Under the pieces are notes generated by a model. It was not told where the DNA came from, did no database searches, and was given only the letters and a program-made list of their open reading frames with translations. A stretch of 64,000 nt of DNA, taken from Zygnema circumcarinatum SAG 698-1b. Its lineage: Eukaryota; Plantae; Zygnematophyceae. The stretch is from the NCBI GenBank assembly GCA_037447605.1, contig CM074805.1, positions 1,025,361 through 1,089,360 on the forward strand, in the 5' to 3' direction. A program made the position numbers and the translations under genes. This document shows, piece by piece, positions 35,837 through 63,272 of this stretch (its first letter is position 1; every line of letters starts with the position of its first letter).

Positions 35837-37875
35837 TCAAGCCCCCATTCCCCACATGTTCAAGAGGCTTCCAAGACATCGTCCATGGCTTCCGCCCACA
35901 TTACTTGAGACAAGCAGCTGCTGTAAAGTCACTGGCGTCGCGTGCCCCCCCGCCCCCAACAGAGAAACAGAGCTCCCCTGCTTCTTCCACGTGGCAGAAG
36001 CAGATTGGCACCCCAAGAACTGCGGCTGCCCACGGGACTGGGTCACGACCGCGTCCAGCTCGGACGCGGGAGCGCCACCTGGCAGCACGTGATTGGTCAG
36101 CGCGGAGCTCGCGACTCCCGGATTGGTCAGAAGCTGAGCCCCCATGTCTGGGGGCACCACTTCTAGGAGGGCGCCGTCAGGGGGGACTCCCGGGGTTAAG
36201 GGCAGCCATCCCCCCCAACCCTCCAGCTCAAGGGCAGCAAGCTGGGATACGTATTCGCTCGGGGAAATTCCATGGAACGAGCCCAAATTACTCTGTGATA
36301 TGTCTGTCAGAAACGAGTTTTCGCTCTCGTGTAGGGACCCATGGTTGGCTTCAAGCTTGGAGCCATTCGACTTCTCGAACAGTTGGGAGAGGTCGCCATC
36401 CATGGAGTTCCCTCCGAGAATCTCATTCAGAAGAGAGTCAATGACTAAGCTCTCATCCATGTCTGCATTGTAATCAGTCCGCCATGGCTGCGAGTTTCCG
36501 ACGGTCTGAACTGCAGCAGCACTGCTCAGCAGCCCTGCAGAGCTCCCCTGAGAATTCAGTATGGAGTCAAAGTCTAGAATTCCCCCCTTCTGCAGACACT
36601 TCCCCCCCATAGTCCCCTCGTGAGCTAGCTCCCCAGCCATGGCTGCAGTCTCCCCCCACTGCCTCTTCTCCAATACCTCCTCTCCAACATCAATGAGAAG
36701 GGGCTGCTCTGTCGGCCATGGCCAGAGCTCCGCATAAGCTACTAGTCGACCCTCTCCTCCGTTCACTACCGTCCCGCCTCTTTCAATCTCACAACCTGAG
36801 TTCGAGTTCGAGTTCGACTCTGCGGCGGGAGGCCCTTCATGGCCGCCGGTCTTTTCGCAAGACGAAGAGGGGCTGTCCGCATTGTGCACAGGCGCGACGC
36901 CGTCGGAGCTCTCGCCATGGCGGCCGGTGGTGTCGCTCGTCAGCCCGGACGAGCTCGAAGAGGCCATCGCCTTCCTCTTCCTGCACCCCCCTCCCTCTTC
37001 TTCCGCGAAGCTCCCACCGCTGTGCGCCTGCACCTCTGAGCTGGTCGCCTGTGTGATAGCAGCAGCAGCAGCAGTGGCGGGAGAGGCTCCGGGAGAGGCA
37101 GTGGGAGAGGCTGTGGGAGAGGTAGTGGGAGAGGCCGGGGGAGAGGCCGGGGGCGGGTGCAGGGGGTGGAAGAGTTGGTGGCGCGCGGGCGGGGCCGCGC
37201 GCGGCGCGTGGTTGTGGAGGTCGGCCTGCGTGATGCGGAGCTCGCGGGGGTCCTGCGGCCGGAAGTCGATGGTCTTCTTGGCGGGACACCCGCGCTCGCG
37301 GTACATGCTGCACCGGTAGTAGTTTCTGCACGCACAGGGAGGGAGGGAGGAGGGGGGGGTCGGAAAGGGGAGAGGGGAGGGGGGAGATGGAGGAAGTGGA
37401 GGGCGGAGAGGGGAGAGGGGGAGAGGGTGGGGTGGGAGAGCGAGAGGGGGGGAGAGGGGTGCGGGACGAGGGAGAGGGGGAAGGGGAGGGAGGGGAGAGA
37501 GAGGGGGAAAGCTGACGAGAGAGCAATGTGAGGGAATGGTGAGATAGATACCTGCGGTTCTGCGTGCCGCGAATATGCTTCTGACCGTACTTGAGCCACG
37601 AGAAGCCGTCGTCAGGGACCTCCAGGTTGCCACCCAGCTGCACAGTTTTCGGCCTGCGGACCCAGCCATGGCAACCGCTCGCCTCAGCACACTCTCCTCC
37701 CTCTCTCTCACTCCCACTAGCCCAAATTGCTCTGCTGAATGCAAGGGCCCCACAGTGCAGCAACTGACCTCTTGAGCGGGCTGCCGTCGGGCGTGATCGC
37801 CACGACGCTGTGCACCACTGTCTCCGCCTCCCCCAGCGCGCCCTCCTCCCGCCGCAGCCACCCCGTCACCTCCAT
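35837..37875 (-). CDS. WRKY-family transcription factor, variant WLKYGQK (WRKY-A)
   Basis: Exons 37875-~37770 (MEVTGWL...GSPLKR), 37653-37552 (QLGGNLEVPDDGFSWLKYGQKHIRGTQNRR) and 37325 onward (NYYRCSMYRERGCPAKKTIDFRPQDPRELRITQADLHNH), followed by a long acidic Ser/Gly-rich tail. Alternative 3' splicing could extend it to 35256. Confidence 0.88.
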
Positions 37876-40800
37876 GGCGCCGCCGCCTGCTCGCTGTCTG
37901 CTGCTGCCACGTGTCCCTTTCACTCGCCCTAATTGCCCATGTCCAGAGCCTCTCCCTCTCTCGGTCCCTCTCGCACTCTCTCTCACTCTCTCTCCCCCTC
38001 CCTCTCCCTCTGCTCAGGAAGGAAGGACGGAAGGAAGTTCCGCGGCGGCGGCGGCGGCGTACTGTTTAAAGGGGCGGCCCGGCGGGCGGCGGGCGGCGGC
38101 GGGCGGCAGCGGGGAGGGCGGGCGGCCGTACGGGCATCATGGCTGCATTTAATGCGCAGCACGTGGCGGGCCCTCGCCGCGCCGCCCCGCACGTGACGGC
38201 CGGGCGGCCGGCCAATCCGCGAATTCTGCCAAGACGGAAGCCCAATGGGAGGGCCGATTTACACGTGTTAAATGCGCCGACCTGGCGGGCCCACCGCGAG
38301 GCACGCGCGGAGATCGTGCGCGGCGCGCCACGTGTGAGCCGGACAGCGCTGGGGCTGTCAACTCTATTCCGCGCCCGGGTCGCGACAAACGCGCAATGAT
38401 TGCGCCGTGCCGGATGCGCGGGGCCGGGGGGGCGGGGCGAGCCAGGCGACGGGCAGGCGGAAAAAGCGGGCAGGCGGAAAAAGCGGGCAGGCGGAAAATA
38501 GGAGGGGGGAGCCTGGAATATGCGCGGAAAGATTTTTCTGGGCGCGGCGGGCAGGGGCGGGCGAGCCACGTCAGTTAGGGCAGGCGCCGCTCGTGCGGCC
38601 CTGCGGCTGACGTGGACGGCGTGGGCGCCACGGCGGCCCCAGCTCGGACCAAAAAGAATCCGAATCCGACGTGGCGTGAAAACGGATTGGCGGAGCGTCC
38701 GAGGACAAAAATATCGACATCTCGCGATTGCGTTTTTATCCTCACGATTTTCCTCCGCCAGTTGCCCGGCTGCCCGCGCGTCACGTCGTGCCAAGGCAGG
38801 CGGGCGGCCTCCTTGCCGACAACCGTTTTCGTACAACTGTTTTGTCGCGAAGCGGCGGTCGTCCCTGGACGGGTCTTTCGCGCGCCCGCAGGCGGTGCCG
38901 CCCGCGGCGATTGGCCGACGCCGGCCGGAAATCGCGGCCGTCGACAAGGGCCGGCAGCCGGGGCCGGGGACGCGCAAGTGACAGGGGGTGACGTCACTTG
39001 CCGGACAGCGCCGGCCCGCGTGCCGTACGGCCGACCGCGCGAGTGCGCCCTCGCACCGGGCGGCCGTACGGCAGAAATCGCCGCCCGCTAATGGGACAGC
39101 CCCGGGCGGCGGCGCACTCGATTGTGGTCAGAAATTTTTGGCTTCCGGGCAGCTGGCGAAGGAATTTCCCGGAGGTGATTGCATCTGGGCCGTCCGATTG
39201 CGTGCCCGGCCAGCTCGGACGGCGGCAGGAGGGCCGCCCGGGGGCGAGCGCACTAACAGGCCAAAAGGGCCCGCCCGGCGGCCAGCGCGGGGCGGCGCGT
39301 GCGGACGACGCGGCCCTGCGTCATGTACTACGTAAAGCGCGTGGCCGCGCTGGCCGGTGCGTGGTACGGACAACAACTTTGGGCGGCAGCCAGCGCGGCG
39401 CCGCGCCACGTGGTGGACTGCGCGAGCGCAAAGCCTGGCGGGCGGGTAACCGCGGGGATCCACCGCGCGAGGGGGCGGGTCCACTTGGGCGGCACCGCCA
39501 TGTGGCAGTGCACCTGGCGCCAGGCGACACGTGTCGCGGCGTGGGTCGCTCCGCGGCGGGCCACGGCCACGCGCGCGCAGAGGGCATCCAAGTGGACTCG
39601 CGCGCGCGCGCGGGTCCGCGTGCACCGTACGGCGCTCGGGAACAAATGGACCGTACAGCCCCGCCGCGCACGTCCTTTGCCCGCCGCGGCGCTTCGAGGA
39701 GCCGTACAGTTGTTGATTGTACGGATCCCAGCGCCGGCCGCCGCTTGACGGTGGTGCCGTAACAAGGGCCGCAAGCAAGCAAGCATGCAAGCAGCCGAGG
39801 AGACCGGGAGTGGACCGGCAAGGCGGTTCAGTGCCACGCGTCCACGCCATCAATGTTGCTGCGTAAACGATGTTGGAGTCTTCGAACAAGAAATTTTCGC
39901 GGTTAATTGAACGTATTTTTTGCAACGAAATTGAACCGCATGTGTGAAGTGCATTACGGCGCATGCTTCAATGGCTCGCAGCCATGCATGGTCGGACCAT
40001 TGCATTGTTTCCCAACCATTGGCTTCAATTGTTGCCAATCATTGGAGTCAATTGTTGCAAACCATTTGACTCAATTTTTTCGAACCATTGATTTGCGCAA
40101 ACGTTCTAATGGTACGGTAATGTAAAACCAATCACTGGTTTCAAAGCTTGCAAACCATTGGTTAGGGACTTAGCCAGCCAGTATGGGCCAATGGTTGATC
40201 GGGCCATTGGAGCGGCAACCATTGGCTAACTGTTGGACGGCGATTCGCAAGTAGTGAAATGGCAACCAATTGGATGCCATCGGGTACCGTTGGCCATTGG
40301 CGTCCGATGGTTCTGACCATTGGCCATGGTCCTACGCCAATGATTCGCAACCACTTGAATGGTTGGCAACCACCAGCATCCAATGATTTCGACCATTGGC
40401 AATGGTTGGCTAGTCCTACGCCAACGCAACCATTGGAAGGGTTGGCAACTAATATACGTGGTTAATTAGGTTCCCAACCACTAGTTGACATCCATGCCAA
40501 TGGTTGGTCCAATGGTTCCGCCGCGTTGGAGCGCTCCAGCAGCGTCGGTCCGCGTCCTGCCCTCGCCACGTGGGCGGAGCGGGGCGAGCGGCTCCGCTGG
40601 CCATTCTAAGGGCGCGACTCCATGGACAGGTTCACCGTCGTGTGCGACGGGCGGTTCACGGACTCCATGGCGGCGCGCTGTGTGCCCGACATTTTTTTTG
40701 CCAAAACGCGCCGCGGATTGAGCTAGATCCACAGCGATGAAGTAACGAGCGTTTACCAATCGCCTTCCGTCACGTGGCATTCAAGGATCGCGCTGGCTCG

Positions 40801-41039
40801 CAGCCGTCGATTGACCTACGCTATCGACGGCCCATATCGCACGGTGGCGTGACGTGGCGACCACGTGCCGAGCGCTGACTGGAGCAAGCCATCCAGAATG
40901 CGCGGGAACTGAACGGCCGAGTTTGGCGGAACTGGCCGCATGTAGCACGGGAAATCTGGGGCCCCGAATTCCACGGTACGGTACCGGCGGTAGCTTTGCG
41001 TTGTTGCTTTGCTTTGTTCCAACCCTCATCCCTTCCCCT

Positions 41040-41105
41040 AGTCAAGTCAAGTCAAGTCAAGTCAAGTCAAGTCAAGTCAAGTCAAGTCAAGTCAAGTCAA
41101 GTCAA
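41040..41105 (-). repeat. (AGTCA)13 pentanucleotide array = 13 tandem W-box (TTGACT) motifs on the minus strand
   Basis: A at 41040 followed by 13 x GTCAA (41041-41105). Confidence 0.9.
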
Positions 41106-41219
41106 AGGCAAAGGCAAAAAGGCAAATGGGTTCCTAGCAATCAGAGGCCCGCCTTCGGGTATGAACTTGGGGCCCGCTGCTGCCGTATGTAGGGATGGCT
41201 TAATTACGACTATATAATA

Positions 41220-41920: not shown

Positions 41921-41975
41921 ATATAATATATATTATATTATATAACTGTGACGACTAGATAACGGCTGTTATATA

Positions 41976-42422
41976 GGAGAACTATATACCGCCCCCCTTT
42001 TTTTGGTTATCCCGCCACTGTTTTTTTGAAATCCGACCCTCCCATTTCGGCTATTCTGCCCCCCTCCCCCATTTTGGATATTTCGGGAGGTGATCGCCCC
42101 CCTATTTTGAATATTTCTTTCCCGCCCCTCCCGTCCTCTCCCTCCCNNNNNNNNNNTCCCCTTCCCTTCCCTCCCCTCCCCTCCCCTTTGCTCTCTCTTG
42201 TGCTCTCTACTCTAGTCTCTCTCTCCTTTGCTCTCACTCCTCTGCTCATTCTCTCTCTCCTTTGCTCTCTCCTGTGCTCTCTACTCTAGTCTCTCTCTCC
42301 TTTGCTCTCACTCTGCTCACTCTATTTCTCTCGTTTGCTCTCTCTCTCGAACGTTGCGCTGATGTGTGAGAAGGAGAAAACGGGGGGGGGTATCCAAAAT
42401 GGGGGGCGGTGTATAATTTTCC
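41976..42422. mobile_element. MITE-like TIR element with 8-bp TSD GTTATATA
   Basis: Ends GGAGAACTATATACCGCCCCCC... and ...GGGGGGCGGTGTATAATTTTCC. GTTATATA occurs at 41968-41975 and 42423-42430. It has a CT-rich interior with an N gap. Confidence 0.8.
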
Positions 42423-42483
42423 GTTATATATTACTTTACAACGCCTTTACAACATGTACGGTCGGACGGTCGTACGGTCGTAT

Positions 42484-43430: not shown

Positions 43431-45841
43431 AGTACCTAAGCACAAAATAAAAAAGCTATGAGCGACAATCTACGCCCCGGCTTAACAACGCAGCCCTAGG
43501 AGCAGTCCGTCTCTAGTCACACCACTCGCGGCCCGCCTGGCAATACGGCCGCAAACGACAAACGGCCGCTCGCCCGCCCTGTCGGCCGCCAAATTGCGAT
43601 GTATCGCTCTACCAACAATATATCGTCTGAGGCTGCTCGACTTCCGTATCGGAAAGACGGTATTTAACGATACGATAGTGTCTGAGAGAGGCGATGCGAT
43701 ACGATACGATACGATACGGCGGCGCGTCGAATGGGTGGAAATCGGCGGCAGACGAGTCGCAGGCCATGAAGGCGATGGAGGCCGCCATGGTGGCGACCTG
43801 GGAGGAGGAGGGGTCACTCCTTTCCGACCTTCACAGTGCATGCGTTCTTGCCAGAGAACACCCCGGTCAGGTCAAGGCATTGAGCTCCCCTACCCGCGGG
43901 CCTGCACTGCCCGATACGGAACCACCTCTTATACATCCTCTATTTTCCAACTATAAAAACCATGGCAGAGACATGCTGTGGGTAGAGAGAGGTTCGCCTC
44001 TTCGCTCCCATCCCCAGTCGTGTTTTTTCAAACAAACTCAAGCTGTACGATGGAGGGCCCATGGGGACTAAATGGTAACCCCGTAGAAGACAGGACCCCC
44101 CTCCGCCAAGAGAGAAGATTATGAACGAAAGCATGGGTTGTTGCTTGCGTCTTGTATCAGGCAGGGATCGCCGGCTGTCTGTGGCTGACCGTGAAGACCA
44201 TCCCTCCCGACTTCACCTCCCGTACCACCCTGCGCTATCGTGGGCTCAGTGCGTCACGGGATTTTAAGCTGACAAGGGCTAATGGTGAAGGGCGAGGACC
44301 TTCAACACGGCATGGTAACTGTGTACCATGTCCGAGAATTTGACTGTCTTTTTCCTTACACCTGCGTCGGATATTTTTTAGCAGGGGCCAGCCAAGGACG
44401 AGGGCTCCGTGATAATCTACATCCTCTATTGTAAGTCATGTTGGCATCCCTCCAGGAAGCCTCAAGGAGAGGGATTAGAGCCCCGCCAAAGGCTCAAGAT
44501 TATGTGCGATGCATGGCGAATCTCCCCCTGAATGAAAGTCAGCCCCAATAGAAGAGAGTCTCTTCTCCTATACCACTGCCACCCTCGCAGTCCCAAGTCC
44601 CCTTCATATGGGGATGTTCGAAGCCAACTGCCTGTTGGGAGCCTCATTCATACGAGGGGACGCGGCATTGGGATTCAAACGGGCTCCCTCGTCTCACTTT
44701 TTAACGGCATGGAAGCACTGCCTCTTCCAGCAAGTACTGTTGACGACCCCCCCCCTGAATCAACTGCCACCTGTTTCTGCCGAGTTCTTCACGACTTGGC
44801 TGCTGACAGGAGGCCCATCCGTGCTGCACCATTCCAATCTTATGCTTATAACTGCCCGTGTGGGGGCTTCACATGCTTTAGATCCTCGTCCCGCACCCCT
44901 ATGTACATTATCTCCTGCCCATGCATTGCACCTCCCATCAATTTCTTCCTCCCTGCACTTTGTTTCGAGTCACCCAGGGCGCCGCTCAGTTACTTTCCAC
45001 CCCCAGTTATCCTGCAGATGTAGCACGTGGGCTGTGCCTTTGGCTTTGAACGACACACAATATTTTGACTGCATATTTGACCGACTGAACTGACAGCTTG
45101 TTGTATTAATGCCACCACACTATGAGATGGACCAAGGTTGGCACGGCGGCCCAGAGGTGACCTATTTTGTTGACCACTTATCGCAAGGAGAGAGGAGGAG
45201 GGAGCCACAACTCATGAGGCATCCAAAACACAGAACATGGCAACCCACACGGAGAATGGACAGTGTTTCCGTTTAGAACGAATTCAAGGAACAAATGTTA
45301 GAGAAGAATATAAAATGTCACAATATTTAAAAAAACTGCCCACTTAACAAATACCCAAAGGCCTACTCCTTTTTGGCTTAAAAAGAATAGCAATGCACCA
45401 CTTTTTAAATCTGAAATGTGAAGGACGAATGAATAGTAGAGAGAACGACCTACCCCAAAAATGATGGGTACAAATACCTGCGCTGAACCCTTCAGGATTA
45501 AACCAATTAATACGCCGCCTAGTCGATCTAATTCCGCCAAAATCAACAATAAAGACCACCCCCCTATCTGTGGGAAACGTAATGAACCCTCTCTGCTTCA
45601 TGCTCCCCTTCATGAAGTTCGTTCCAAAGCACGACAAAGAATTGCAGCGCAGTCCGTAGAGACCATTCTAAAGAACGCGCCGAACTCTCTTCGTGCCTTA
45701 TTGCTGCCCGACTGACTTGAAGACCTCAATAAAAAAACCGCACCCAAACATGAGTCCAACTCAACCGTAAGTCCACTTAGTGAAGCTGCTCCCCCCCACC
45801 CCCCCTTCCTGACAACTCCATATTTATATATACAGCACCCC

Positions 45842-47285
45842 TCATGCCTCCAGTCTGCTACTGCAGCTACCATCCCACGAACGGTGCCTCCTCCAACCTG
45901 GCTCTCCCATCTCTCTCTCTCTCTCCCTCTCTACCACTCCCCGGCTGCAGCTGCTCTCGCACCGAGCTTCCTCCGAAAGGGAGAAGGGGGTGCATCTGGG
46001 GGGGGGCTCCATATTGGAGGGAGGTCCGCTAGAAGAGTGGGAGGGGAGAGAGGAGGTAGAGAGGACAAGCCATCCGGGATCAAGGGTCTGCCAATTTTCC
46101 TTTGGGAAGTCGCGTGAAGAAGATGCGGGACGAGACTCTCTCTCCTCAGCTATCGAGCTCTCTCGTATCAGAATGTCGGCTGCTCTCTCCAAACTGTTCA
46201 CTAAGTGGGTCTCTTCTACAGGGCCTTCTAACAGTTGGGGCGGAGAGGAGGTGGGAGGGAGGGCAGAGGTAGGCTCCTGCTGCTGTGCCACGTGGCCTTC
46301 CCGCAGGCGGTGGAGGGAGAGGATGGGGTGGTTGTGCTGCGCCATATATGCGGTCCTCTCTCTCTGAAAGGAGTCCTTGTGGTAGTCGATGGTGCGCTTA
46401 GCGGGACACTCCGTCTTCTTGTACATCGCACAGCGGTAGTAGTTCCTGCACCGCTCGCAGCCACGCAAACCCTAACTTCGTGCACATGGAAACGGCAAGG
46501 CAGGAGCAGGCCAGGAGGAAAGCGAGACATTTCAATAGGGAGGAAGGGCAGAGGGAGGGAGACAGGGAGAAGGGGAGGAGGGAGGGAAAGAGGGAAGAGC
46601 ACAGTGAATATAGGAAAGGTTGCTATGGGAAGGAGGCGAAGGGGGAGGGAGGGGGAGATGAGAGAGAGAGAGGTGGAGTTGGAGAAAGTGAGAAGAAGAG
46701 TCGCTGTACCGCATGTAACGAGTGCCCTTGATATGCTTTTGGCCGTACTTTTCCCAAAAGTATCCGTCGTAAGGGATTCCCAGCCGGTGATGAATCCGCC
46801 TGCACAGACACAATGTCAACATATCTTCAGCCCAAGCAAGTATCTCCAGGATTTAGCAAGGATTTGCGCACAGTAAAGTCTGAGCATTTGCAGACGGCGA
46901 GTATCATTCAGAAGCTGCAATCATCTTACAGTTTCCTGCACAAAAACAGCAACATGATGTTGTCAAGCAGAGCCCACCTTCTGCGCACGACCTTATCTCC
47001 CTCTTGCCTGTTCTCAATATCCTCCTCCGAAGCAGGGTCGTCTTGGCCTGGTCTGCACACAAATCTCGCAAAACATAGTTCATGAATATTTTGAATTTTG
47101 CGTCGGATTTCGAGAGTTTAACTGGACATTGTAAGTGATAAACAGAAATGTTCAAGCATGACATAGAGAGTTGCTTTGACCATTTCCTTCCGGATGAACC
47201 TTACGTGCTCTGCCCACTACCACCCGCATCCTCTCTCTCAGGGAGGCCCTCCATCTCCTCTCCAGTGGGGGAGTCAGTTCCGCCC
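45842..47285 (-). CDS. WRKY domain unit, variant WEKYGQK (WRKY-B); possibly the C-terminal half of a two-domain gene starting at 49976
   Basis: The exon starting at 46799 reads RIHHRLGIPYDGYFWEKYGQKHIKGTRYMR; the next exon reads NYYRCAMYKKTECPAKRTIDYHKDSFQRERTAYMAQHNH. Stop at 45842-45844. In-frame upstream exons at 47285-47205 and 47052-46978 (internal ATG at 47254). Confidence 0.85.
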
Positions 47286-48193
47286 CTGCACAGACTCCAT
47301 CCACAGCTCAAATCTCAGTTCTTCCCAACTCAGATCAATACACAAGGGATATACGCACAAGTCGCAACTCATACAAACTTCAACTTCTAGCCGATGCTAT
47401 ACAGTCTTATCTTAACATGATCGCAAGTATCGAAGGGAGCTTTTGGAAGAGAATGAAAGAGAGGTGAATGGGAGAGAGGGTAAGTTCTGAGCATACAAAA
47501 GGCTTTTTGGGCTGAGGGACTCTTTACGAGTGGTTTCCAGGTCTCCTTCTGCAGCGCGATAATCTTCAGACGGCCTGCAAACACTCACAATATGAAAAGG
47601 ACAAACCTCTCAGGATTCTCTGTTCGTTCCTCATCCCCACTGCATAGCTCCTCCCTTCTCAGCAAGACCGAAAAAAAGGGTCTCACCGTCTAAGATCTTC
47701 GTGGCCTCTCTCCTCCTGCCTCTCCCACCCTGCAGGAGGGCGCGATTCCTCAATGTACGGTCCTGCAAATGAAGCCCCTATGAACTGTCAAGCGTGATGG
47801 ATAGAAGAAGCGCGGAAACACAAAAGACCCATGCTCTGCTTGCTCCCAGTGCTCTTGTTTTAGAGAAAGAAAATTAAAGGCATTCGCCGTCCCCACTCAC
47901 TACATCTCCACCTCCCTCCCACCCTCCATCTGCCTTGTCCCTCCGCCCCCACGATCCCTCCTCCCTCCCCTTCCCCCCCCCACCCCCCCTCCCTCCCATT
48001 CTCCCTCCCTCCCTCTCTCCCTCCCTCTCTCCCTCCCTCCCTCCCTCTCTCCCTCCCTCCCTCCCTCTCTCCCTCNNNNNNNNNNCCTCCCTCCCTCCCT
48101 CTCTCCCTCCCTCCCTCCCTCTCTCCCTCCCTCTCCCTCCCTCCCACTCTCCCTCCCTCTCTCCCAACCTCTCTCCCTCCCTTTCTCCCTCCC

Positions 48194-49976
48194 TCACTCC
48201 CTCCCTCCCTCTCTCCCTCCCTCCTCACCATTGCCCTCCGCCCCACAGCCGCTGCTCCCCTCCGGTCCGGCCGCAGGGGCCAGTCCGAGCCAACCCGCGT
48301 CCAGGCCCTGCCATCGCCCTCTCCCTCTCCCTCCCTCCGCCCCCTCTCCTCCTCTCGCCTCCTCCCTCACCACCGCCACGTGGCCCCTCAATTGAAGCCC
48401 CACGTCATCTTCTGGAGGGCCACAAACCACCTCTCCCGACCCTCCGGGCCGCCTCTCCCCTCTCACAGACAGCCACCCAGTAGTGGCTCCCTCTCCTCCC
48501 CCTCCCCCTCCCTCTCTCTCACTCCTCTCAGACCCCTCCAATGAGGGGCTTGCAGAGGTGTCTCTCTCAGCCTTTGCAGGCAGTTTAGTGAGCCCAATAT
48601 TCAACAGCAGCGCTTCTAGGAGAGCTCCGTTTGTCAAACAACTCTCTAAGGCTACCGGTTTCAATGGTTTCTGTGAATATTCTTCCAAAGATGCAGCTGC
48701 TTCCCCTTGAGATATCTTCCTCTTCTGCGAGCCATTAGGGTTATAGTAGACCTGACGGTCCCCATGCTCCGCTTCAGACGGAGGTTCAAGCTTCATTTCC
48801 GGCGGCAGGGAGGGAGGGGCTGCTTCGTGCGATACGGTGAGAGAGTGAGGGTGGGAGCGGTCGGGAACGAGAGGGTGGTTGTGCTTAGCGAGGTGGGAGA
48901 CCACTGTCCTTCGGAGGTTGTCTTTGTGGAAATCAACGGTTCGTTTCGCGGGGCATCCGAGGATTTTGAACAGACCGCATCGGTAGTATTTCCTGCTCAA
49001 ATTCAAGCGGAAGCAGGAGCATTCAGAAGCTGAGAGTGGCACTGCTGAGTGAGAGAAAGAGAGAGAGGGGGAGAGAGGGAGGGAGGGCGAGAGAGGCATT
49101 CTGCGAGAAGAATGTAGGGAGGAAGGAGGCAGGGGATAATGGTTTGTTTCCTTTTGTCTGGGTGAAATAAGCAGATTGGGGGGAGGGGGCAAACTTACCG
49201 CATGAAATCAGTGCCCTTGATTCTCTTTTGTCCGTACTGTTGCCATAGATGCCCGTCGTCGGGAAGACGTAGAGGATGCCGGATTCTCATTCTGTGCAAT
49301 AACTCTTCGAATAATGATTAAAACAATTGTTGTATTCAGTTAATAATCTCAAACCAATATAAACAAGTCTAGTGTACGCTATAGAAGCCAGCACCCTTAG
49401 GGCTACAAAATTTACCTCTTTCTCGGGATGTCTGTTTCGTCAATGCGGTTCCTTTCTCCATCATGTTCAACCAGCGACGAGTTCTCAGGTGCAGATCTGC
49501 GGCCGCGAATGTCCGAATATTGAGTTCAACATTTTTTGGTTTCCACAAGTCTACAATTAAAGAAAACCCCAATTACTTTACCTTCTGAGGTTTGCGAACC
49601 CTAATATCCAAAATGGCCCGTTAAAACACATGCTTCTCTCGTACTCCGAAGCGCTCCTGCTAGTTTCATCCTTAAGAGAGAGCCTCCTACTCGGCTGACT
49701 GACACATGACGGTTCTCCATGGCGCCATGGTCTTTGTATGTTGAAATGGCAGACGTAGAGAGAGGGGAGGAGAGGGGAGAGAGAGAGAGAGCGAGAGAGA
49801 GAGAGAGAGGACGAGGCTAACTCTGCATCCGGCGTGCCCCAGCGTTGCGGGGAATTGCCAGCTGGCGCCACGTGGTCCTCCTCCGCCTCCTCCCTGCTGG
49901 GCGCGCGCCCCTCCGTCTCGCTCCCCCCGCTGGGCTCCGCCTTCACGGACGGCTCGGTCTCCCCGCCAGCCTCCAT
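48194..49976 (-). CDS. WRKY domain unit, variant WQQYGQK (WRKY-C)
   Basis: ATG at 49976 (MEAGGETEPSVKAEP...). Exon ~49291-49199 reads MRIRHPLRLPDDGHLWQQYGQKRIKGTDFMR. The exon from 48992 reads KYYRCGLFKILGCPAKRTVDFHKDNLRRTVVSHLAKHNH. Confidence 0.85.
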
Positions 49977-52084: not shown

Positions 52085-52175
52085 ATTGTGACCGCTTCCT
52101 CTGGTTCCCTATGTCGATTTTATCCATGTACATTTGATGGCCTTGCCATCGTGAGTTCAATCAAACATCCTTCCC
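52085..52175 (-). repeat. Dispersed ~90-bp hairpin repeat, copy E
   Basis: Nearly identical to copy C at 43232; ends ...CATCCTTCCC. Confidence 0.8.
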
Positions 52176-53814
52176 TTATAACACTTTCACAGGTCGGACC
52201 ATGGGATCGCCAGCCATTGGACGACCATTGCCTGGCACTGGTTGGACGATCCAACGGTTCACAACCATTGCAATGGTTGATCCAATGGTCCGACCTGTGG
52301 GCTTCGGCGCGGCGCGCGACGTGACAGGCCGGAGGGCGACGGAGCACCTCGCGCGTGATGATGGACGTTTCCAAGGTTCTCTCCTTCAAAGTTTCCTTCG
52401 GCAGGAGGGAGGTTCGCTCCCGCTGGGCGGCCCACAGGCCACACCCATCGATTTGGGGGGGCACGGGAGGGACACGTGTCGAGACGGCAGAGAACAGTCG
52501 AGGGATGGCCATGGCTCAGAGTCAGCCAATTTAGTTGCATGCATGCGCGCCGTAGAGACTGACTGACTGACTGATTGACTAACAGACTGGCCAATTCCAC
52601 ATCCAACACACCCACAATGAGGAGTACGTGGCAAGCCGTGGTTGGTTGCAAAGCACACCCTCATCTGAATCATGGCCTCATTTGCGGCGCGGCATTGCCC
52701 CCCCTTCAAGCCTCACTCGAGGTCACCTGAGCTCCATCCTGAACCTGCCTGCGATTCGACCTCACTCACTCACTCCCTCACTCTTTAGCGTCAACTTAAA
52801 CCCCAACGGCCAAGCCCCCCCCCTCCCCCCCCCCACCCCCTCCTAAGTCCACGGATGGTCCATGGCTGCCACACCCTCTTCTTTGCTCCATTGCCGAAGC
52901 CGACGAGCTTTGCGCAGCTTCCCCCGTGTTCGCAGGCTCCGGCAATTTTGGTTTTAGAATTGAATAAATCTCTTCAGTACCGTACTAAACAAAGGCCTTT
53001 CACTATGCGGCATTGGGCCTGATCGCAGTTGTCCACCGTGCCACGTGTCTGCTGATCGACGGACGAGACTCATCCGAAGGCAGCTTCACTGTCCCTGTGA
53101 TGGGACTCGCCTCGCCCTCCGCAGAGCCATTCTCTTCCCCGCCATGGCGTCCCTCCTCGCCTTCCGCCTCCCCCCTCCTCCTCCCGAATGTACTGCTCCC
53201 AGGGGGGTCGTCCATGGCTTCCTGCACTTGCCTGCATTCCGATCGTCTGGTGAGGCACACTTGGAAGCGTCTCAGCTTTATGAACCGCGGCGCGACTTGG
53301 AAATTGCTGCTGCCTTTAGAAATAAAAGCCTCCGAATTACATGGGAGCCTTCAGACAAGCGCGGAATGAAGGCCTTACCGAAGTGGGTTCTCGCAAGCAG
53401 CTTCATTTACAGGGGAGTGAGGCTCACACAGGCTCCGACTCCCCCTCTCCTCCTGCGCCATATTCAGTCTGCAGCAACATCGTGAAGCAGCCCCCATTAG
53501 ACCCCTCCACCTCCGCGAGAAGAAAAACGAAACCATGGCAATGGCAACCAGTCGATCGACTCCTTCAGAAACTCCCCCACACCTCCCCTTTCAGAGAAAC
53601 CTTGGCATGCCAAGCCGACTTCAGTGAAGTGGTGAAAGAGAGGGAAGCAAGTTTCATATATTGGGGGCCTCTCTCAATTTCCTCATGTGTTGAATGCGGA
53701 TGTAAATTCGGTACCGCTCTCACCTCTCTCGCAAAAGACAGTCTTTGCGGCTTCCCTCCCCCGGCCTCGTCTTGCTCTCCTGTGGTTGCTTTCTTCTTCT
53801 TCTTCTTCTTCTTC

Positions 53815-55190
53815 TTAATCTTCTTCTGCATCGGCAGGCAGCGCTTCCTTCCTATCAGCTATCTGCAGTACTCTGCGAAGCGCTCCGAAATTTTTGATTT
53901 AGGGCGGGAGCTGATAGTTGGGAAATCTTTAACTAGTTTGAACAGCGAGTGGCTTACAGCCACTCAGAGATGAAAGTCAAGCAGCCAACATGATGATCCT
54001 TCATCTTTCTTTTTAAGATGGCGCAATCACTCTAACAATAAAAGCTCAGCGCGCATCACCTGCTTCGCCTTTTCCTCCGTCTCCTTAGTCTTCTCCGTCC
54101 CCTTCTCACCTTGTTTCTCCAGTTGCTGTTTCAGCTCATCGACTTGTTTCTGCAGCCTGCCCACACATCATTTTTACATTGATCAGCACCATACATTGCC
54201 GCAACCGCGTACTGTCTGCCTCATTCCCCTCCCCTTCCCTCCCCCTGTCAAAAGCTCAGACAAAGCACTCCCTCCCTCCCACCCCCCCCACCCCCCCTCA
54301 TCGACATTTCCCCCCCTTCCCCCCCCCCCCCACCCCCATAACGCAGTTCCATGTAAGAACCGTTCAACCGTTGCCTCTGCCTGCTGCCTTCCCTGTTCCG
54401 CCGCCGCAAGTCGCTCTCTAAGGTCCCGCCCTTCAAGCTGCTGCGCTGCGATCTCCGTCTTCAACCTCTCTGTGTTGCGCTCTTGATCCTCCATTGCTTC
54501 CTCAAACGAGCGGTTTGTCAGAATGCAGCAGTCCTGCATCCAATCAATATCAGCGCGTGAGAGACCCGTTCAATAGGCGGGTTTGGGCCGGTCCCCAAAA
54601 GACAAAGAATTCGCTTTCAGTTCATGGGTCACCTGAATGAAAGGTTTTCAGCCGCTGACAATGAATTGACTGCTTGAAGACGAAGGAGGGGCCCCAAGGC
54701 CATCGACACCCCGCAAACAACCATGCCGGCCTTTCCCGACCTTTTTCCGTTTTGCAAAAAAGTAGTGGTCTCATTGAAGGGCAAAACGTTACCTTAACTC
54801 CTCCCTCCACATTCTCGTTATTGACATCTTCACCCTTTCGCAGCCGTTTGGAGCCCTCAAACCTACTATCCTCCAGTCGCTGCTGTTCTCCGTCTCCTGG
54901 CCACTCTCCATCTTCACCCATCACTGTCACAACACATCAAATTCATGCCATTTACTACATAGAACGGAATGAACAAACCAAAACTGGTACCTGATTGCTT
55001 CTAAGTTGAAAAAACGGGTTACTTGTAGCAGCAGCAAAGCTTCCCGCTGGCACGGTTCGAGCTCACCTATGGCGGAAGCCTTGCGCTTGGTTGGCTCCTC
55101 GCTACTGGCTGCCTCAGCGACTTCCCGAAAGACAAACGAAAGAGCGGCTCCTGCAGTCGCACAACAGTACGAGAGAGAGAGACTGAGCGA

Positions 55191-55237
<47 letters not shown>

Positions 55238-56113
55238 TCCCCAACAACCGACCCATTCAAACAACAAAATGCCCACGAAATGAAAAAAGTTCGGAACCCA
55301 ACCCCCCCCCCATTGCGCACACCTGAAAACTCCTGGAACAAGAAGGGGTGGCTCAGATGCAGCGCCTCCGGCGGCCCCACGAGCGAGAGCACGTCCCCGT
55401 GGCGGAGGCGGCGCTCGGGCCCGTCCCTCTCGAGGCGCGCGCGGTTGATCCACGTGCCGTTCGCGGAGCTGTCCTGCACCCACGCCTCGAGCTGCCGCCC
55501 CGTGGCGTCGCCCACGCGCTGCCGCCGCACCACACGGCAGTGCCACGCGTTCACCGAGGGGCTCGCCACGTGGCAGTCGGCGGTCACGGGGGCGCGCCCC
55601 AGCACGTGCTCGCGCGCGAACAGAGCGAACTCGGCGCCGTCCACGCACTCGCGCGCCTCCGCGGAGAGCGCGGTCAGCGCGCCCCACTGCGAGGAGCGGC
55701 CGGCCGCCAGGGGGGTCCGCGCGAGCCGGGCGGCGGCCGTCCACACCGACACTGCGCTCTCGCGCTCGCCGGGGGAGGCCATGGCGGGCGGAGGGAAGCG
55801 GGAGGTAGGCAAGGGGACGTCTGGGCCGGGCGGAATGCCGGTGGCCATGGTGGGCGGAGGGAGGGAGGAGGCAGGCAAGGGGAGGTCTGGGCCGGGCGGA
55901 ATGCCGGAGGCCATGGCGGGCGGAGGGAGGCGGGAGGCAGGCAAGGAGAGGTCTGGGCCGGGCGGAATGCCGGTGGCCATGGTGGGCGGAGGGAGGGAGG
56001 AGGCAGGCAAGGGGAGGTCTGGGCCGGACGGAACGCCGGAGGCCATGGTGGGCGGAGGGATGCAGGAGGCAGGCAAGGGGAGGTCTGGGCCTGGCGGGAT
56101 GTCGGAGGCCATG
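53815..56113 (-). CDS. FHA-domain / coiled-coil protein, At2g45460-like, apparently short or truncated
   Basis: WGALTALS...EHVLGR...SPSVNAWHCRV...VQDSSANGTWIN..RLERDGPERRLRHGDVLSLVGPPE, then LSFVFREV...KRK, matching from memory the plant FHA protein At2g45460 pattern. Coiled-coil exons follow at ~54540-54370 and ~54160-54055. The model reaches TAA at 53815-53817; the 3' structure is uncertain. Confidence 0.7.
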
Positions 56114-56115
56114 GC
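55777..56115 (-). repeat. 5 x 66-bp coding tandem repeat (22-aa unit MA[ST]GIPPGPDLPLPASSLPPP[TA])
   Basis: Five contiguous GGCCATGG[C/T]GGGCGGAGGG... units, in frame with the FHA ORF. Confidence 0.92.
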
Positions 56116-58221
56116 GGCAGCGGAAATGACGACGGGACGGAGAAGGTAGTGAGGGGGGAAGGGGAAGCACCGCGAGGCGTGACGTACGGTGACGCGACGT
56201 GACGGCCCCACGAAGTTTCGAGCGCCGGAAAGAAGGCGCCAAGCGGACATTCCGACGTCCGTACAGCGCGCGTCTGGAAGGGGATTGCGCCAGCAGGGAC
56301 CGCGATCCGTGGGTGCCACGTGGCTGGTGCAGACGGCATCCCTGCCAGTGGCCGTACACGTGGCCTTATCGGGCCACGTGAACGGCCCGATTGCGAAATA
56401 TCTGCGGAAAGGTGACCAGGAAGTGGGATTTGGATGTTTGTCGCGTTGCGGCGCGATACTGGCAATCTGAGCGCCAGCCGTTTCGAAAAGGTTGGAAATA
56501 TCGGATCCGAGATTGGCTGGTACGATAGATTCAGATCTTATGAGATTCGATCAAAGATTCGAAGGTATGTCCAGCCAAATGTCCAGATTCTCTGGAGAAA
56601 ACGATGATATTTTGGCTGTATCCTCCGCAGCCAATCGCGGCTGACTATCGGGCGTGCGGATGTCGACACGTTTCCTAACACGTGGTTGTCCTTTGGGGCG
56701 ACATTTGTCGTATCTGTTGATCTCGGCCGCCTCTGCCGCGCCGATGGCATCTGGCATTCAAAATTTGTACAGGGCGTGTCCGTACATGGTCACGTGGTTG
56801 TGTCAGCACGATCTCTACAACGCTCGTGATTGGTTGCAAAAAATTTGAAATCGTACAAATCCTCGGTTTTTCTGGAGCGTCGGGGGTCAATCCAACAGAA
56901 TCTTCCGTAACAAAAGAAATAAAAACAAGTACTGTCGACACAGAGATTCTTCCCCAAACAAGTTACGTATTCTGATTCCACTTTAGTATACCGTACCTTA
57001 CCGTACCGTGCTTGAGAAAAAACTCAGATATTCAAATTTCCCGTCCCTCTGGTTTCTCAAAGCAAACTGACGGTTGCGCGTTTTGTGGCCGCGGACGGTG
57101 GTATGATGTCATCACGCGTCAGAAACCTGAACTCGCGAAACTTCGTCTGGTTTCTCCGGCAAGTTGGCTGCTCGCCCTAGACAAGATGATGACGTCACTA
57201 CTGGCGGTGAGCAAACTGCAACCTATACAACGTCCGTGACCGCAAACTCGGACGCTTCCGCAGTGACGTCGTCAGTGACATCAGCCGATTGCGGTAAGGG
57301 CCTGCGGGTCCGCTCCCTCCCCGCGACTCTGCCTCGGTGCGCCGCACGTGCGGGTCGCGCCAGGCTGGAGCCGCACGTGTGATGCTCAAAAATATTTATT
57401 GGACTCCCTTGTCAGAGTCAAGAGTTTAGGCGGCAACAGACGACTGGAACACGAGCCATCCAGATGTGTCGGTTGGAGTGAGACCCTCTCCTACGCTCCC
57501 GGCTCCTCAAGGCAAATCACCTTCCATTGGAACTCTAGTTCGCACTGAGGAGGACATTCTGCTCTCTTCAAATCAAAGGCACTCACCCATAGCCCAGTCT
57601 ACACACAAAGAAAATGCCAAAGATAATGCTGCGGAACAACACAAGAGAGAAGTTTGTAGGAGAAAGCTCACGAATCGAAAATTCCTTAATGCATAATCAC
57701 CCACATGAAAGTTGCTTCCCAACACTACAAGGTAAGCTCTCTCACTCACTACCTCACACCACGAGTGAAGGTACCCTCGATACACAAGCAAGCACAGAAT
57801 AAGAGTTAATCCTACCAAGCAAAGCTTCTCTCTATTATACTACCATGGCTATGTGACGTGACTCCTTCCTGTGGACCGGACGTCACGTCACAGCCGCACC
57901 CCCTTGCAGATGCATGCATTCAACAGCCAGCTACGCGGCCTATGTAAACCTACTGCACTGTATGCCAGCACCGACCTAGGGTATGCGTTCCGTACTGTTC
58001 CGCCGCCCGTGCAAGGTCTGACTCGGTCCCCTCCTCAGTTGACCTCGTCAGAGCCGCGGTCCCCACTACGGGTCCACGTGGTGCCGCCTCCTGGCGCCGC
58101 CATTCTCAGCGCGTTAGGCGCACACCGCCGAAGTCTGTACGGCCGCCATACATGGTAGAAGGACTAGGAGCACATCCCACGTCACACAAACTTAGTACCA
58201 ACATAGTTAGTGTATACTTTT

Positions 58222-59272: not shown

Positions 59273-59282
59273 ATACTTTTTT

Positions 59283-59367
59283 GCGACCAGTTCTTCGTGG
59301 TTCCCCATGCTTCTTTTGTCCATGTACATGTGATGGCCTCGCCATCGTGAAATCAATGCCACTTCCC
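59283..59367 (-). repeat. Dispersed ~90-bp hairpin repeat, copy F
   Basis: Its reverse complement GGGAAGTGGCATTGATTTCACGATGGCGAGGCCATC...GAAGAACTGGTCGC closely matches copies D and A. Confidence 0.8.
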
Positions 59368-61816
59368 TTTTCTTGAATGCCCTCGCCCTTTTAGGTCACA
59401 AGTAGGTTTGGACAACACTTTACGGGCAGCATCCTGAATTTTTGAAGTTAGTCTAACAAAGCTTCTACTGTTGTCAAGAGAACGCTTGGAAATTGGGATC
59501 GCCACAACACAATGGACATTACACGACAATACAGATTGACGATGATGCCTGCCGGAACTCCCCCGACATATGAAACTTTTTAAAGTGTCCCCGACAGCTA
59601 ATAAGTCAACGAGATGCATCATCCACTGATAAAGCGTCCGCATTGCGAATCCAACATGTGATGAAACGTGGCTTGCATGCCTATAAACCTATGCGAGTGT
59701 TGTACGAGACGAAATGTGAGCTCCCTTCCTGCTTTCAGGGTGTCTGTTAGCGAGAGCAGGAAAGTCGTCCTTGTGCGTCAGCCCTAAACAACCTTCACTC
59801 TTCTGTCACGACTTACGAGTTGAGAGCCGAAAGCCGCCACTGTGCAGGTGACGTGAGTCGGTTTCCTCATTTATCCGCACTTCGCCGAAATGATGACGTA
59901 ACGATCCGGTTTTTACAACAAAAAAAAAAAGGCAAAAAAAACACAGTGCAACACTTCGCGTGCCTCCGCTTTCTTTCTGCAAATCGGAGTGAAGTTCGCA
60001 ATTTGCATCTGCCAGAAAAAGGATTTGGAGCATCAAACATTTGGAGCATCGCCTCAAAGAAGATGCCGTGATCGCAGGGACGAAGTTGGCCTTGTTGGAG
60101 GTCGAGCAGCAGCCTTTTACGTTTCGTACCAGCAGTGCATCCTTCATCCCTGCCTTACAACATCGCTGCTAAAAGATAGGCACGTAACGATGGCGACGAG
60201 GCATGCCAGCAAGCATCAGAGGATCATCTCTCGCAGCCACCAAAAGAGAATTCATGATTGGATCTGGTTTGACATGATCTCCTTCTATCAGGGGACAAGT
60301 CCAATATGGTCAACTTCATGTCTCCTCGCTGCAAGCAACAAAGCCATTTCGCTTCGCATTGAATCCCGAACGGAGGGAGGCGCTAAGCTATAACTGCTAC
60401 CCAGTGCCTTATTGTTTCTCCACCGGGAAAGTTTAGCCACAGATTATGCCCTTCTGAGGAAACCCTAAACTAGCCTTTATTTCCTTTGCAGCCCAGCGGA
60501 TCAACAAGGTAGCCGGAGACTAACAAAGGAACCGTCAGCCAACCTACGCCTTATGAACATTTATTTGCACGACGGTTGATTGCCGGTTCAAAATGAAAGA
60601 GACAACATGACTGCCCTTTCTTTATAAAGCCTCTACAAACTGGCGACGGCAGACTGTGCCTCTGCAGGTTCGTGCATTCAAACGGAAAGGGCACAGCCAC
60701 ATCCTCTTCAATAGTACAACTGCAGAATGTCCGGTACGAGCGCCAAACCCCTAGGCTGAAGCCATGTTTTTAAGGTCGCTGCAGCCTTTTCAAACTTTGC
60801 AAAGGTCGTCATTTCCGTTGGAAGGCACAAATCTTAGGAGGAGAATTGGATTAGATTCTAGCAATAGTCCATGGGGCTTTACACCCCAAGAGCTTCCAAA
60901 AGGGCAGCCTGCCACTGATTGGTCACCTCCGCCATGAAACTCCAGATTCGAACTGCCCGTTGCTCCATTCATGTAAACTGCAAATGAGAACAAAGATCAA
61001 GAACACCAAAAGATTTCAAAAAGTCCACTTTCCATTGGCCTTCTTTTGGAGAGCAACTTTATCTAAGCAAGTCTAGAGAGGGTTTAGGATTTCTTCACGG
61101 TCAAAACCTGCCATGACATTGGCACACTTCGAACCCCCCAGTCCACTTCTGATAACTCCTTCCCTTTACTAAGGGATCATCCAAACACTTGCAGTGACGA
61201 AGCCAGTCATATTTGGGAGATGCCAAGATTCCTGAGCACATTCAAGCAACAGTCCAACGACGTACTGACTTGAACGTGATTCATTGCAGGCATTGTAATC
61301 GAGCTACCTCATTCTACTGCGCGAGCAGGCAGTGATGATATACATTGCAGGTAGTGGGAAATCACCTCCAGGGATAGCCGTGCCGGCTCCACATTACTGG
61401 AAGTCGTCCTTGAAAGCACGTCGTTGCATTGAGGAGAAAGTAGTTAGCGTCTCTGGAAAAACTGTGGTGTCCCGCGAATCGATTAAAACCTGTAGCCTGC
61501 AAAAAATCTACCTCGATGGCCGCTTAAAGAAGAGTAATGCTTCAGAATGAATTGAATGTACGAAGCACAGAAATAGTACTCTCTGGCGACTCCCAATGAT
61601 TTCCGACCATAACCTCAGACTCCACCTTCTCTAACTTCCTGCCTACCACCCCCCCCCCCCCCCCCCCCCCCCCCNNNNNNNNNNCCCCCCCCCCCCCCCC
61701 CCCCCGCCTTCCCTCCAAAGAAACGCAAATCCCTTTTCTTTACGTCTCCTTCTGCAGCGCTTGCAGACGAGCAACACGTCCTGGATCGCAGATTTCCAAT
61801 TGGCTGCCTCACCCAA

Positions 61817-63272
61817 TCAAGGTAGTGTCTCATTTGGGAAACCTAAATGCAAAGCTTGACCCCAATGCTTCAAATCAGAAGCCGTTTGGCCCTTTCCTTT
61901 CTCACAATCACTACTTGATAGATCTGCCTCGATTGGTGTTACTGGCTGCTCCTCAGGCATCCTATGTTCCATTGGTCGCAGAGCTTCCGGCAAGTTTCCC
62001 CCCTTGCTGTGACCCCCCTCATGACCGCTGCTGCTGCGCGTGTCAATGGACCTCGCATCAGAAGAGAGGGCCCGCCCCATGGGGGGCATGGGGGCATCCG
62101 TTTGCGAAGGGCCCTGGTCCATGGTCACTATTGTACGGCGAGGGTGGTTGTGGACGTGGGAATCTGTGATTCGCAGCTCAGCCGGGTTGCTCTTTCGGAA
62201 GTCGACAGTTTTCTTTGCAGGGCAGCCGAGCACCTTGAACATGCTGCAGCGATAGTAATTCCTGAAGAAGCAAAGATGAGGACAGCAAAGCAAGGGTGTA
62301 AGGGTTTGGAGATTTGCTTCAAACACACGAAGCCTCAACCTGGGAGACTTGGAGCCTATTGACGAGTGAAAACCTAACAATTGACTCAAGCAGCGAATTC
62401 TCGCCAAGAATCCAATACCCGAAAGGAAGACAGAGTAGACATTCTGAAGCAGAAGGAGGTGCGCAAAAACTATTGCCGTACAAACAACAATATAAAGATA
62501 GATGCACAACAGTAATGATCAAGCACTCGCAAGGCTGCCTATGCCTATCCCTAATCTGAGCCAACAGACCAATGGTCCAAACAGCTGACTCAACAAGATG
62601 AACAAAATGAGGAGCTGTAAACAGAAGCCTATGAACGAACGCAAAGACAACAAGGCACCCACACAAAGTAAAGATTGCACACGGCAAATTGACAGTTATG
62701 GTTGATGGTAGAATTCACCACATCGTTTGTGAACCACCCAACAAGCGAAACTCTGCTATTAGCACACTAATGCTGCCGTCTCGTCTGCTTAACAGAAGAG
62801 TGCGGAGCTCTCACCGCTGATGTTGCGTTCCCCGAATGTGCTTCTGCCCATACTTGAGCCACATGAAACCATCATCTGGCACTTCCAAATTGCCTCCAAG
62901 CTGCATCATCCGAGGTCTGCACATGCTTCGCGAAAAAAGATTAACACCATATGCGGTAAAAGCAATTAAAAGCCTTCAAGTGAATACGCGTTTATCTCAC
63001 ATGCGTGTTGAACAAGTGTTCAGAAAATAAACACATCCAGAATCGCCTTCATCAGAATAAAGTAGTACCGAAAATTACTCAGGCGATAAACAAGTCTCAA
63101 AAGAAGACGCTGCAGCCGCTAAAAGGCGCTCGCCATATTCATTGGACACGTTCAATTTAGCTTCACACCTTTTGGAGGGGCTGCCCTCTGACTCGCTTGG
63201 CAGTGCGCCACCTCCCTGCGCAGCGCAAGCTCTCTGCGGCCATTGCTGCATATCCAGCTCCGACGCGAGCAT
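61817..63272 (-). CDS. WRKY-family transcription factor, variant WLKYGQK (WRKY-D), closest to WRKY-A
   Basis: Exon 1 ends ...GSPSKR (~63171). Exon ~62915-62815 reads PRMMQLGGNLEVPDDGFMWLKYGQKHIRGTQHQR. The exon from 62261 reads NYYRCSMFKVLGCPAKKTVDFRKSNPAELRITDSHVHNH. The start codon and 3' end are uncertain (N gap at ~61675). Confidence 0.82.

Follow-up and report, generated by a model that had tools for sequence, protein, structure and literature searches.

A cluster of three WRKY genes, one of them transcribed with two WRKY domains, in the alga Zygnema circumcarinatum

What is a run of WRKY domains, none of which carries Arg at the second position of its heptapeptide, doing in an alga, and where in the WRKY family does it belong? 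This question is raised by a stretch of 64,000 nucleotides from Zygnema circumcarinatum SAG 698-1b (GenBank assembly GCA_037447605.1, contig CM074805.1, positions 1,025,361 to 1,089,360 of the forward strand; hereafter the window, in whose own numbering all positions are given), where an initial annotation made from the letters of the DNA had placed four minus-strand WRKY domains, here called A, B, C and D, in four tandem loci. The Zygnematophyceae are the conjugating green algae, the lineage sister to land plants. The locus holds three constrained WRKY genes, A, C-B and D, in a cluster of which part is expressed: expression is seen for C-B, the gene that holds both domain C and domain B. We put a probability of roughly 0.7 on the reading that these are three intact genes of a zygnematophyte WRKY clade encoding working transcription factors with a changed preference for the sequence flanking their target core. 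The clade is a new subfamily of a well-known family and not a new kind of protein; the new element here is the RNA-supported two-domain gene C-B.

Four WRKY domains in three genes

A six-frame scan of the window for W..YG.K heptapeptides finds exactly four, all on the minus strand, and a scan for the zinc finger finds C-x7-C-x23-H-N-H on the same strand 200-600 nt downstream of each of them (Table 1). The heptapeptide and finger halves of every domain are separated by a GT..AG intron (226 nt in A, 264 nt in B, 206 nt in C and 553 nt in D) of phase 2. In the context R/[NK]YYRC it interrupts, behind the second base, the codon of the Arg that stands five residues ahead of the first Cys. All eight exon halves match the Pfam WRKY family (PF03106) singly, their scores of 22.6-33.6 bits exceeding the gathering threshold of 21, and a tblastn search of the window with the spliced domains A to D gives no fifth WRKY copy. 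The heptapeptide is invariant among the four at W, Y, G, Q and the last K; position 2 is L, E, Q and L in A, B, C and D, respectively, and position 3 is K except in C, where it is Q. The four zinc ligands stand at conserved positions in every domain, the second Cys is followed by the signature CPAK[KR]T[IV]D[FY], and the Cys-Cys loop exceeds that of groups I and II by two or three residues. This four-domain pattern cannot be chance. As to the four domains and their coordinates, their finger, their intron and the loss of basic residues at heptapeptide positions 2 and 3 (Arg2 is gone in all four, and Lys3 also in C), the initial annotation is matched in every detail. Its four tandem loci, on the other hand, are reduced to three genes, as domains C and B share a single RNA-supported gene.

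Table 1. Positions of the WRKY features and assembly gaps in the window, together with related proteins found by the profile search
Feature	Position	Strand	Description	Basis
Heptapeptide A	37578-37598	minus	WLKYGQK	six-frame scan
Heptapeptide B	46736-46756	minus	WEKYGQK	six-frame scan
Heptapeptide C	49225-49245	minus	WQQYGQK	six-frame scan
Heptapeptide D	62841-62861	minus	WLKYGQK	six-frame scan
Finger A	37208-37312	minus	C-x7-C-x23-H-N-H	finger scan
Finger B	46328-46432	minus	C-x7-C-x23-H-N-H	finger scan
Finger C	48875-48979	minus	C-x7-C-x23-H-N-H	finger scan
Finger D	62144-62248	minus	C-x7-C-x23-H-N-H	finger scan
Gene C-B, coding region	45842..49976	minus	10 exons, 698 amino acids, two WRKY domains	RNA-supported
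Gene C-B, exons 1-5	50005-49822 (ATG 49976), 49496-49416, 49291-49199, 48992-48230, 47763-47686	minus		spliced contigs
Gene C-B, exons 6-10	47573-47496, 47284-47205, 47052-46977, 46798-46710, 46445 to stop 45844-45842	minus		spliced contigs
Domain C	48875..49245	minus	N-terminal in C-B, residues 95-149; WQQYGQK; intron 48993-49198 (206 nt)	intron RNA-confirmed
Domain B	46328..46756	minus	C-terminal in C-B, residues 483-537; WEKYGQK; intron 46446-46709 (264 nt)	intron RNA-confirmed
Intron of C-B with assembly gap 48076-48085	47764..48229	minus	48230 joined directly to 47763	transcripts
Gene A	35837..37875	minus	exons 37875-37769, 37653-37552, 37325-35837; 565 amino acids; one WRKY domain near N-terminus	predicted
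Gene D	61817..63272	minus	exons 63272-63169, 62916-62815, 62261-61817; 216 amino acids; one WRKY domain	predicted
Gap	42147-42156		intergenic, between A and 3' end of C-B	
Gap	61675-61684		~130 nt beyond the predicted stop codon of D	
P0001			WLKYGQK, x7/x23/HNH; 61% identical to A	profile search
P0002			WNKYGQK, x7/x23/HNH	profile search
P0007			WLKYGQK, x7/x23	profile search
P0015			WLKYGQK, x8/x24	profile search
P0016			WLKYGEK, x6/x24	profile search
P0017			WHKYGQK, x6/x23	profile search
P0020			WLKYGEK, x8/x26	profile search

Of the words of positions 45300-50300, 55-61% are present in seven sequencing runs that come from four studies, and Logan contigs from four of these runs, one per study (X1, X2, X4 and X6), were aligned to the window. 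In all four runs the contigs lack exactly the predicted GT..AG introns, which appear as CT..AC joints on the plus strand, and the contigs are therefore derived from RNA. The introns inside domains B and C are base-exact in the RNA joints of the four runs, and further joints delimit the four small exons (exons 5-8) that lie between the domains. The exons of C are joined through these small exons to the exons of B in record 3 of X1 (1575 nt) and in record 12 of X4 (1975 nt), and the contigs of X2 and X6 stop at the repeat-rich intron between exons 4 and 5. The ten exons together form one continuous open reading frame (ORF), whose ATG is preceded by an in-frame stop at a distance of five codons, and the chance of an open frame over the 104 linker codons landing in the frame of B is estimated at ~0.002. 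These observations support B and C as parts of a single transcribed gene. Between the linker that precedes domain B and the N-termini of A, D and C-B no significant similarity is seen (z at most 1.3), and a fusion origin of C-B is therefore putative.

The repeat-rich intron contains an assembly gap, which lies inside a (TCCC)n repeat at 47955-48224 (Tandem Repeats Finder; period 4, 67.8 copies). Since the contigs bridge this gap, both of its flanks belong to one transcript, and the reading frame is untouched. None of the three gaps in Table 1 touches a WRKY exon, and that A, C-B and D are neighbours depends on how the scaffold was joined at the other two. Two further features of the contigs concern the same region. 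At position 46659, inside the intron of domain B, the contigs of all four runs that cover it have one base fewer than the assembly, and this form, which has no coding effect, makes up most or all of the depth in three of the four; the difference is either an assembly error or a strain difference. In X1 and X4, a contig form of low depth connects 46673 with 48314 across 22 foreign letters, and it could be an alternative product or a chimeric assembly product in the repeat-rich region.

Genes A and D are predicted models. The model of A has GT..AG introns of 115 and 226 nt with matching phases, and its last exon is an uninterrupted ORF of 495 codons in DNA of 63% GC, for which the chance is estimated at ~1e-6; the domain is followed by a tail of 450 amino acids rich in Ser, Pro, Ala and Gly. 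The model of D has GT..AG introns of 252 and 553 nt, also with matching phases, and the donor AAG/GTGTGA at the end of exon 1. The first exons of the two models end alike, with GSPLK(R) in A and GSPSK(R) in D. The 3' end of D is uncertain, with an assembly gap close behind the predicted stop. Word-index searches return no database protein match for the 495-residue exon of A, with low-complexity words dominating the candidates, and none for the last exon of D.

A zygnematophyte clade within the WRKY family

A profile of the four finger exons was searched against 1.84 billion representative proteins and gave 48 matches, which include the proteins at the foot of Table 1. The named relatives are from Closterium sp. 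NIES-53/54, Closterium NIES-68 and Netrium digitus, all of them Zygnematophyceae. P0001 is encoded on an intron-less contig of 2.7 kb, which looks like a transcript. A contig of run SRR9302961 (L002, positions 1613-1890), from another alga and with 40% GC, carries WCKYGQK and an x7/x23/HNH finger, with an intron of ~70 nt at the same Arg codon as in the window domains. Over the clade, the second heptapeptide residue is L, E, Q, N, H or C, the Cys-Cys loop has 6-8 residues and the second spacer 23-26; with such a range of loop lengths, x7 is labile and thus a weak signal of homology. The lower-ranked profile matches are almost all land-plant WRKYGQK proteins with C-x5-C-x23-HNH, except for a three-domain, group I-like protein of Drosera, and the two informative names below the clade members are WRKY22 (IIe) and WRKY17 (IId). 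No H-x-C domain of the group III type occurs among the profile matches. With the P0001 domain as a word-index query, P0001 itself is the sole match, and a feature search of the ESM Atlas gives no usable match. The clade is confined to Zygnematophyceae as far as it has been seen.

A tree of 34 domains and 65 columns was made with IQ-TREE (LG+C20+F+G4) from the four window domains, six clade relatives, representatives of IId, IIe and group I from the profile search, and twelve reference domains taken from the supplement of Rinerson et al. 2015 (PMC4350883). A long branch (0.79), supported at 99/99, sets the domains of the window together with the six zygnematophyte relatives apart from the rest, and group III (100/99), IId (98/92) and IIa+IIb (99/94) each form a group of their own. 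Within the clade, A joins D (94/90) and B joins C (93/66), and a Closterium protein stands next to B+C (84/79). The lineage-specific WRKY subfamily that the initial annotation had proposed is thereby borne out, as are its pairings of A with D and of B with C. The window domains lie outside group III and IId/IIe, and no paper describing this zygnematophyte clade was found in the literature search; the clade is distinct from the seven land-plant groups.

A recent local expansion does not account for the domains. Synonymous sites are saturated in every domain pair, with a proportion of synonymous differences (pS) of 0.62-0.91 over the 65-codon domain, and the proportion of nonsynonymous differences (pN) is far lower, 0.15 against a pS of 0.82 for A-D and 0.25 against 0.74 for B-C. 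The highest nucleotide identity among the copies is 71%, no sequence outside the domain can be aligned between the paralogues by tblastx or by blastp of the gene models, and relatives are present in Closterium and Netrium; in tblastn of the zygnematophyte proteins against the window, too, the WRKY domain alone aligns. With saturated synonymous sites and pN well below pS, the domains are old duplicates under purifying selection and not a recent burst, pseudogenes or assembly duplicates. What the proteins have in common beyond the domain is their layout. In A, D, C-B, P0001 and P0002, the WRKY domain lies 45-95 residues from the N-terminus, just behind a basic patch (KRPK, KRPR, RKRMRIR, RRRR), and after it comes a long tail that is not conserved and in which Ser, Pro, Gly, Ala and acidic residues abound.

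The finger, with its group III spacing and group I/II ligands, has a precedent in RRS1/AtWRKY52, whose solved WRKY domain (5w3x_B, 7p8k) reads YYRC-AYKFTHG-C-(23)-HNH, that is C-x7-C-x23-H-N-H. A grapevine paper also lists C-X7-C-X23-H-X-H, where the formula stands beside 'C2HC' for group III genes and is apparently a table error. As to the heptapeptides, WEKYGQK, WQKYGQK and WNKYGQK occur singly in angiosperm family surveys, and WLKYGQK and WQQYGQK are in no paper found by the literature search. The WRKY-domain sequences of PMC4350883 (supplementary file 1) include none of these variants, and WQKYGQK occurs once in the R-protein file of that study. Its fungal and moss 'group III-like' WRKYs have other heptapeptides (WKKYGNK, WKNNGNT) and H-x-C or other endings, and are thus not members of the clade. 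The intron is an ordinary one. Groups I (C-terminal domain), IIc, IId, IIe and III share the PR (R-type) intron, which is of phase 2 and cuts the Arg codon ahead of [x]YY[RK]C (PMC4350883), and the four domain introns are of this ancestral kind, in canonical position and phase, without exception.

Among the known groups, IId and IIe (GhWRKY17, PDB 9m0k; AtWRKY11, PDB 8iex; AtWRKY22-like) share with the algal genes one domain with a C2H2 finger ending in HNH, the PR intron in the same codon and phase, a CPA[KR]K-like motif and an IKGS/T-like context after the heptapeptide. When the P0001 domain is compared with solved WRKY domains by phmmer, two IId domains score highest (52 and 51 bits), followed by WRKY1 and WRKY33 N-terminal of group I (43-45 bits), RRS1 (38.5 bits) and, lowest, OsWRKY45 (32 bits). 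An AlphaFold model of residues 55-140 of P0001, the closest database relative, shows the beta-sheet WRKY fold with confidence (predicted local distance difference test score, pLDDT, 83), and its top PDB matches are all WRKY domains; it superposes best on W-box-bound GhWRKY17 (template modelling score, TM, 0.81; root-mean-square deviation, rmsd, 1.7) and then on RRS1 (TM 0.79, rmsd 1.6). In sequence score and modelled fold, IId is closest to the clade, and in the best tree the clade is placed with IId and IIe (91/58). The algal domains differ from both in that the loop is x7 and not x5, Arg2 is replaced, T[IV]D[FY] stands instead of [HQ]VER after the finger, and a long, 99/99-supported branch parts the clade from them. 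A HARF motif and a calmodulin-binding C-motif outside the domain are features of IId, and neither HARF nor [VI]SSFK is found in the models of A, D and C-B.

With group III (AtWRKY30/41/70; OsWRKY45, PDB 6ir8) the clade has the single domain, C-x7-C-x23 and the PR intron in common; it differs in that the last ligand is His and not Cys (H-N-H in all four domains), in that the window domains are not nested in the group III branch, and in the score of OsWRKY45, the lowest among the solved domains. RRS1 (PDB 5w3x, 7p8k) has the identical finger formula, but it is part of a TIR-NLR (nucleotide-binding leucine-rich repeat) receptor of a flowering plant and an effector target, whereas the algal genes are without NLR parts and the identity is ~35%. 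C-B resembles group I (AtWRKY1/4/33, Klebsormidium kfl00096) in its two domains, of which the N-terminal one is more degenerate in the residues that contact DNA. In group I, the x4/x22 and x4/x23 domains go back to distinct ancient lineages, and it is the C-terminal domain for which the PR intron is reported (PMC4350883); in C-B, both domains are x7/x23, both have the PR intron, and each is the nearest to the other in the tree. The two-domain architecture of C-B therefore most likely arose independently of group I.

Could the clade nevertheless be the algal sister of land-plant group III, the 'proto-group III' of the initial annotation, in which the C-x7-C loop predates land plants and the last ligand changed from His to Cys later? 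The x7 and x23 spacings are common to both, and a tree constrained to join the clade with group III costs no likelihood, its log-likelihood being equal to that of the free tree (approximately unbiased, AU, test p 0.47); the four group III references form their 100/99 clade without the window domains, and a sister relationship stands at this p value. RRS1, which by a convention said to go back to Eulgem and colleagues in 2000 is placed in group III, combines x7/x23 with HNH and is the second-best structural match. On the other hand, the best tree puts the clade elsewhere, with IId/IIe, the phmmer ranking begins with IId and ends with OsWRKY45, the profile matches below the clade carry C-x5-C-x23-HNH and never H-x-C, the CPA[KR]K motif resembles the CPARK of IId/IIe, and the range of loop and spacer lengths within the clade means that x7 can recur. 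On 65 columns, a proto-group III position of the clade is neither supported nor rejected, and the phmmer scores, the CPA[KR]K motif and the lability of the loop lean towards IId/IIe. A descent from the stem of group III is accordingly rather unlikely in our view. Much the same low weight is due to its wider version, in which the clade would be a surviving stem lineage of group III (or of the ancestor of III and IId/IIe) with an Arg-less, non-W-box code and with C-B as a second invention of a two-domain protein. If such a stem lineage were real, the longer Cys-Cys loop and the PR intron would predate land plants, and the switch from His to Cys would be a later, land-plant event.

Proposed DNA binding and alternative roles

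How the proteins would act can be proposed from solved WRKY domains. GhWRKY17 touches the bases 5' of TGAC through R250, and its binding is all but lost in R250A; the residues Y252, Q254, K255, R264, Y266, Y267 and R278 are essential to it (PMC12905487). The binding of AtWRKY1-C is abolished by K314A and no more than reduced by R313E (PMC1851648). The equivalents of the indispensable residues of GhWRKY17 are kept in the four algal domains, with a conservative change of R278 to Lys. Together with the reduced binding of R313E, this suggests that domains A, B and D would still bind a TGAC-like core. The proteins may enter the nucleus by means of the basic patch N-terminal of the domain, and the W.KYGQK beta-strand would then be inserted into the major groove as in other WRKYs. 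The replacement of Arg2 by Leu, Glu or Gln would leave the TGAC-like core and make the preference for the 5' flank weaker or different. Domain C, which is also without Lys3, is probably a weak binder alone and may be auxiliary beside domain B. The long low-complexity tails, rich in acidic residues, Ser and Pro, could serve as regulatory or activation regions.

Several points weigh against reading the locus as three working genes. The near elimination of GhWRKY17 binding by R250A (PMC12905487) suggests that the loss of Arg2 is possibly worse than assumed, and DNA binding by members of the clade is argued by analogy with these proteins. The models of A and D are ab initio and no database protein matches their exons, and nothing outside the domain is conserved, either between the paralogues or with other species. 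Logan contigs may merge overlapping transcripts, and the link of C to B consists of contigs in two of the four runs and the open frame. If the binding were lost altogether, the domains could be protein-interaction or decoy modules comparable to the integrated WRKYs of plant immune receptors, a role that had been suggested for them at the outset. The absence of Arg2 from all four domains and of Lys3 from C fits with this, as do the effects of R250A and K314A. However, none of the four domains has lost Y, Q, the last K, the PR Arg, YY or the zinc ligands, and at the Arg of CPARK the change is a conservative one to Lys; R313E only reduces the binding of AtWRKY1-C, and the domain is under purifying selection beside a patch resembling a nuclear localization signal. 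Pfam gives no match, and hence no NLR or receptor domain, for the long ORFs that lie upstream of A and between the genes, and the protein models align with their relatives over the WRKY domain alone. Nothing was found that points to a decoy, and we regard this role as quite improbable.

The ab initio status of A and D also bears on whether either or both are untranscribed relics and the cluster is in part a product of scaffolding, for which the lack of database matches to their exons and the three 10-N gaps between A, C-B and D would speak. The ORFs of A and D are intact, however, their splice sites are canonical and their ligands conserved, the constraint between them is strong (pN 0.15, pS 0.82), and with at most 71% nucleotide identity the copies are too diverged to be assembly duplicates; this explanation is very improbable. 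The reading as three intact genes of working transcription factors is thus the one we retain.

Neighbouring sequence and meaning for the family

The rest of the window matches little that is known. Ten long ORFs between and around the genes have no Pfam match, and the whole window has no Rfam match. A perfect (TTGAC)13 microsatellite on the minus strand at 41041-41105, ~3.2 kb upstream of the predicted ATG of gene A and downstream of C-B, yields overlapping W-box cores TTGACT, where chance predicts none; it may be an array of WRKY targets or no more than a microsatellite. Directly upstream of A, the block 37900-39900 has 62-76% GC, against ~50% around it, and a CpG observed/expected ratio of 1.1-1.5; its ORFs are open in all frames, a 54-nt inverted match lies around 39021-39073, and the block has no Pfam, Rfam or plasmid match and no second copy in the window. 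Another GC-rich stretch contains a 66-nt tandem repeat at 55774-56114 (5.2 copies, 90% matches), around which long overlapping ORFs at 55067-56359 have no Pfam match. Positions 52095-52188, between C and D, and 59291-59384, in the interval upstream of D in the same numbering, share ~90 nt, with a translation identity of 52-67% in several frames and on both strands; the shared stretch is probably a small dispersed repeat.

The evolution of WRKY genes from algae to land plants is poorly resolved. A 2015 study had one charophyte with group I and IIb genes only and placed the origin of IId, IIe and III later (PMC4350883). A well-supported, expressed and constrained zygnematophyte WRKY clade, which combines the PR intron and a loop of group III length with the ligands of group II, adds a missing piece to this history. 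With its many residues at position 2 of the heptapeptide, the clade is a natural experiment on the part of this position in DNA recognition, and C-B is a likely independent origin of a two-domain WRKY.

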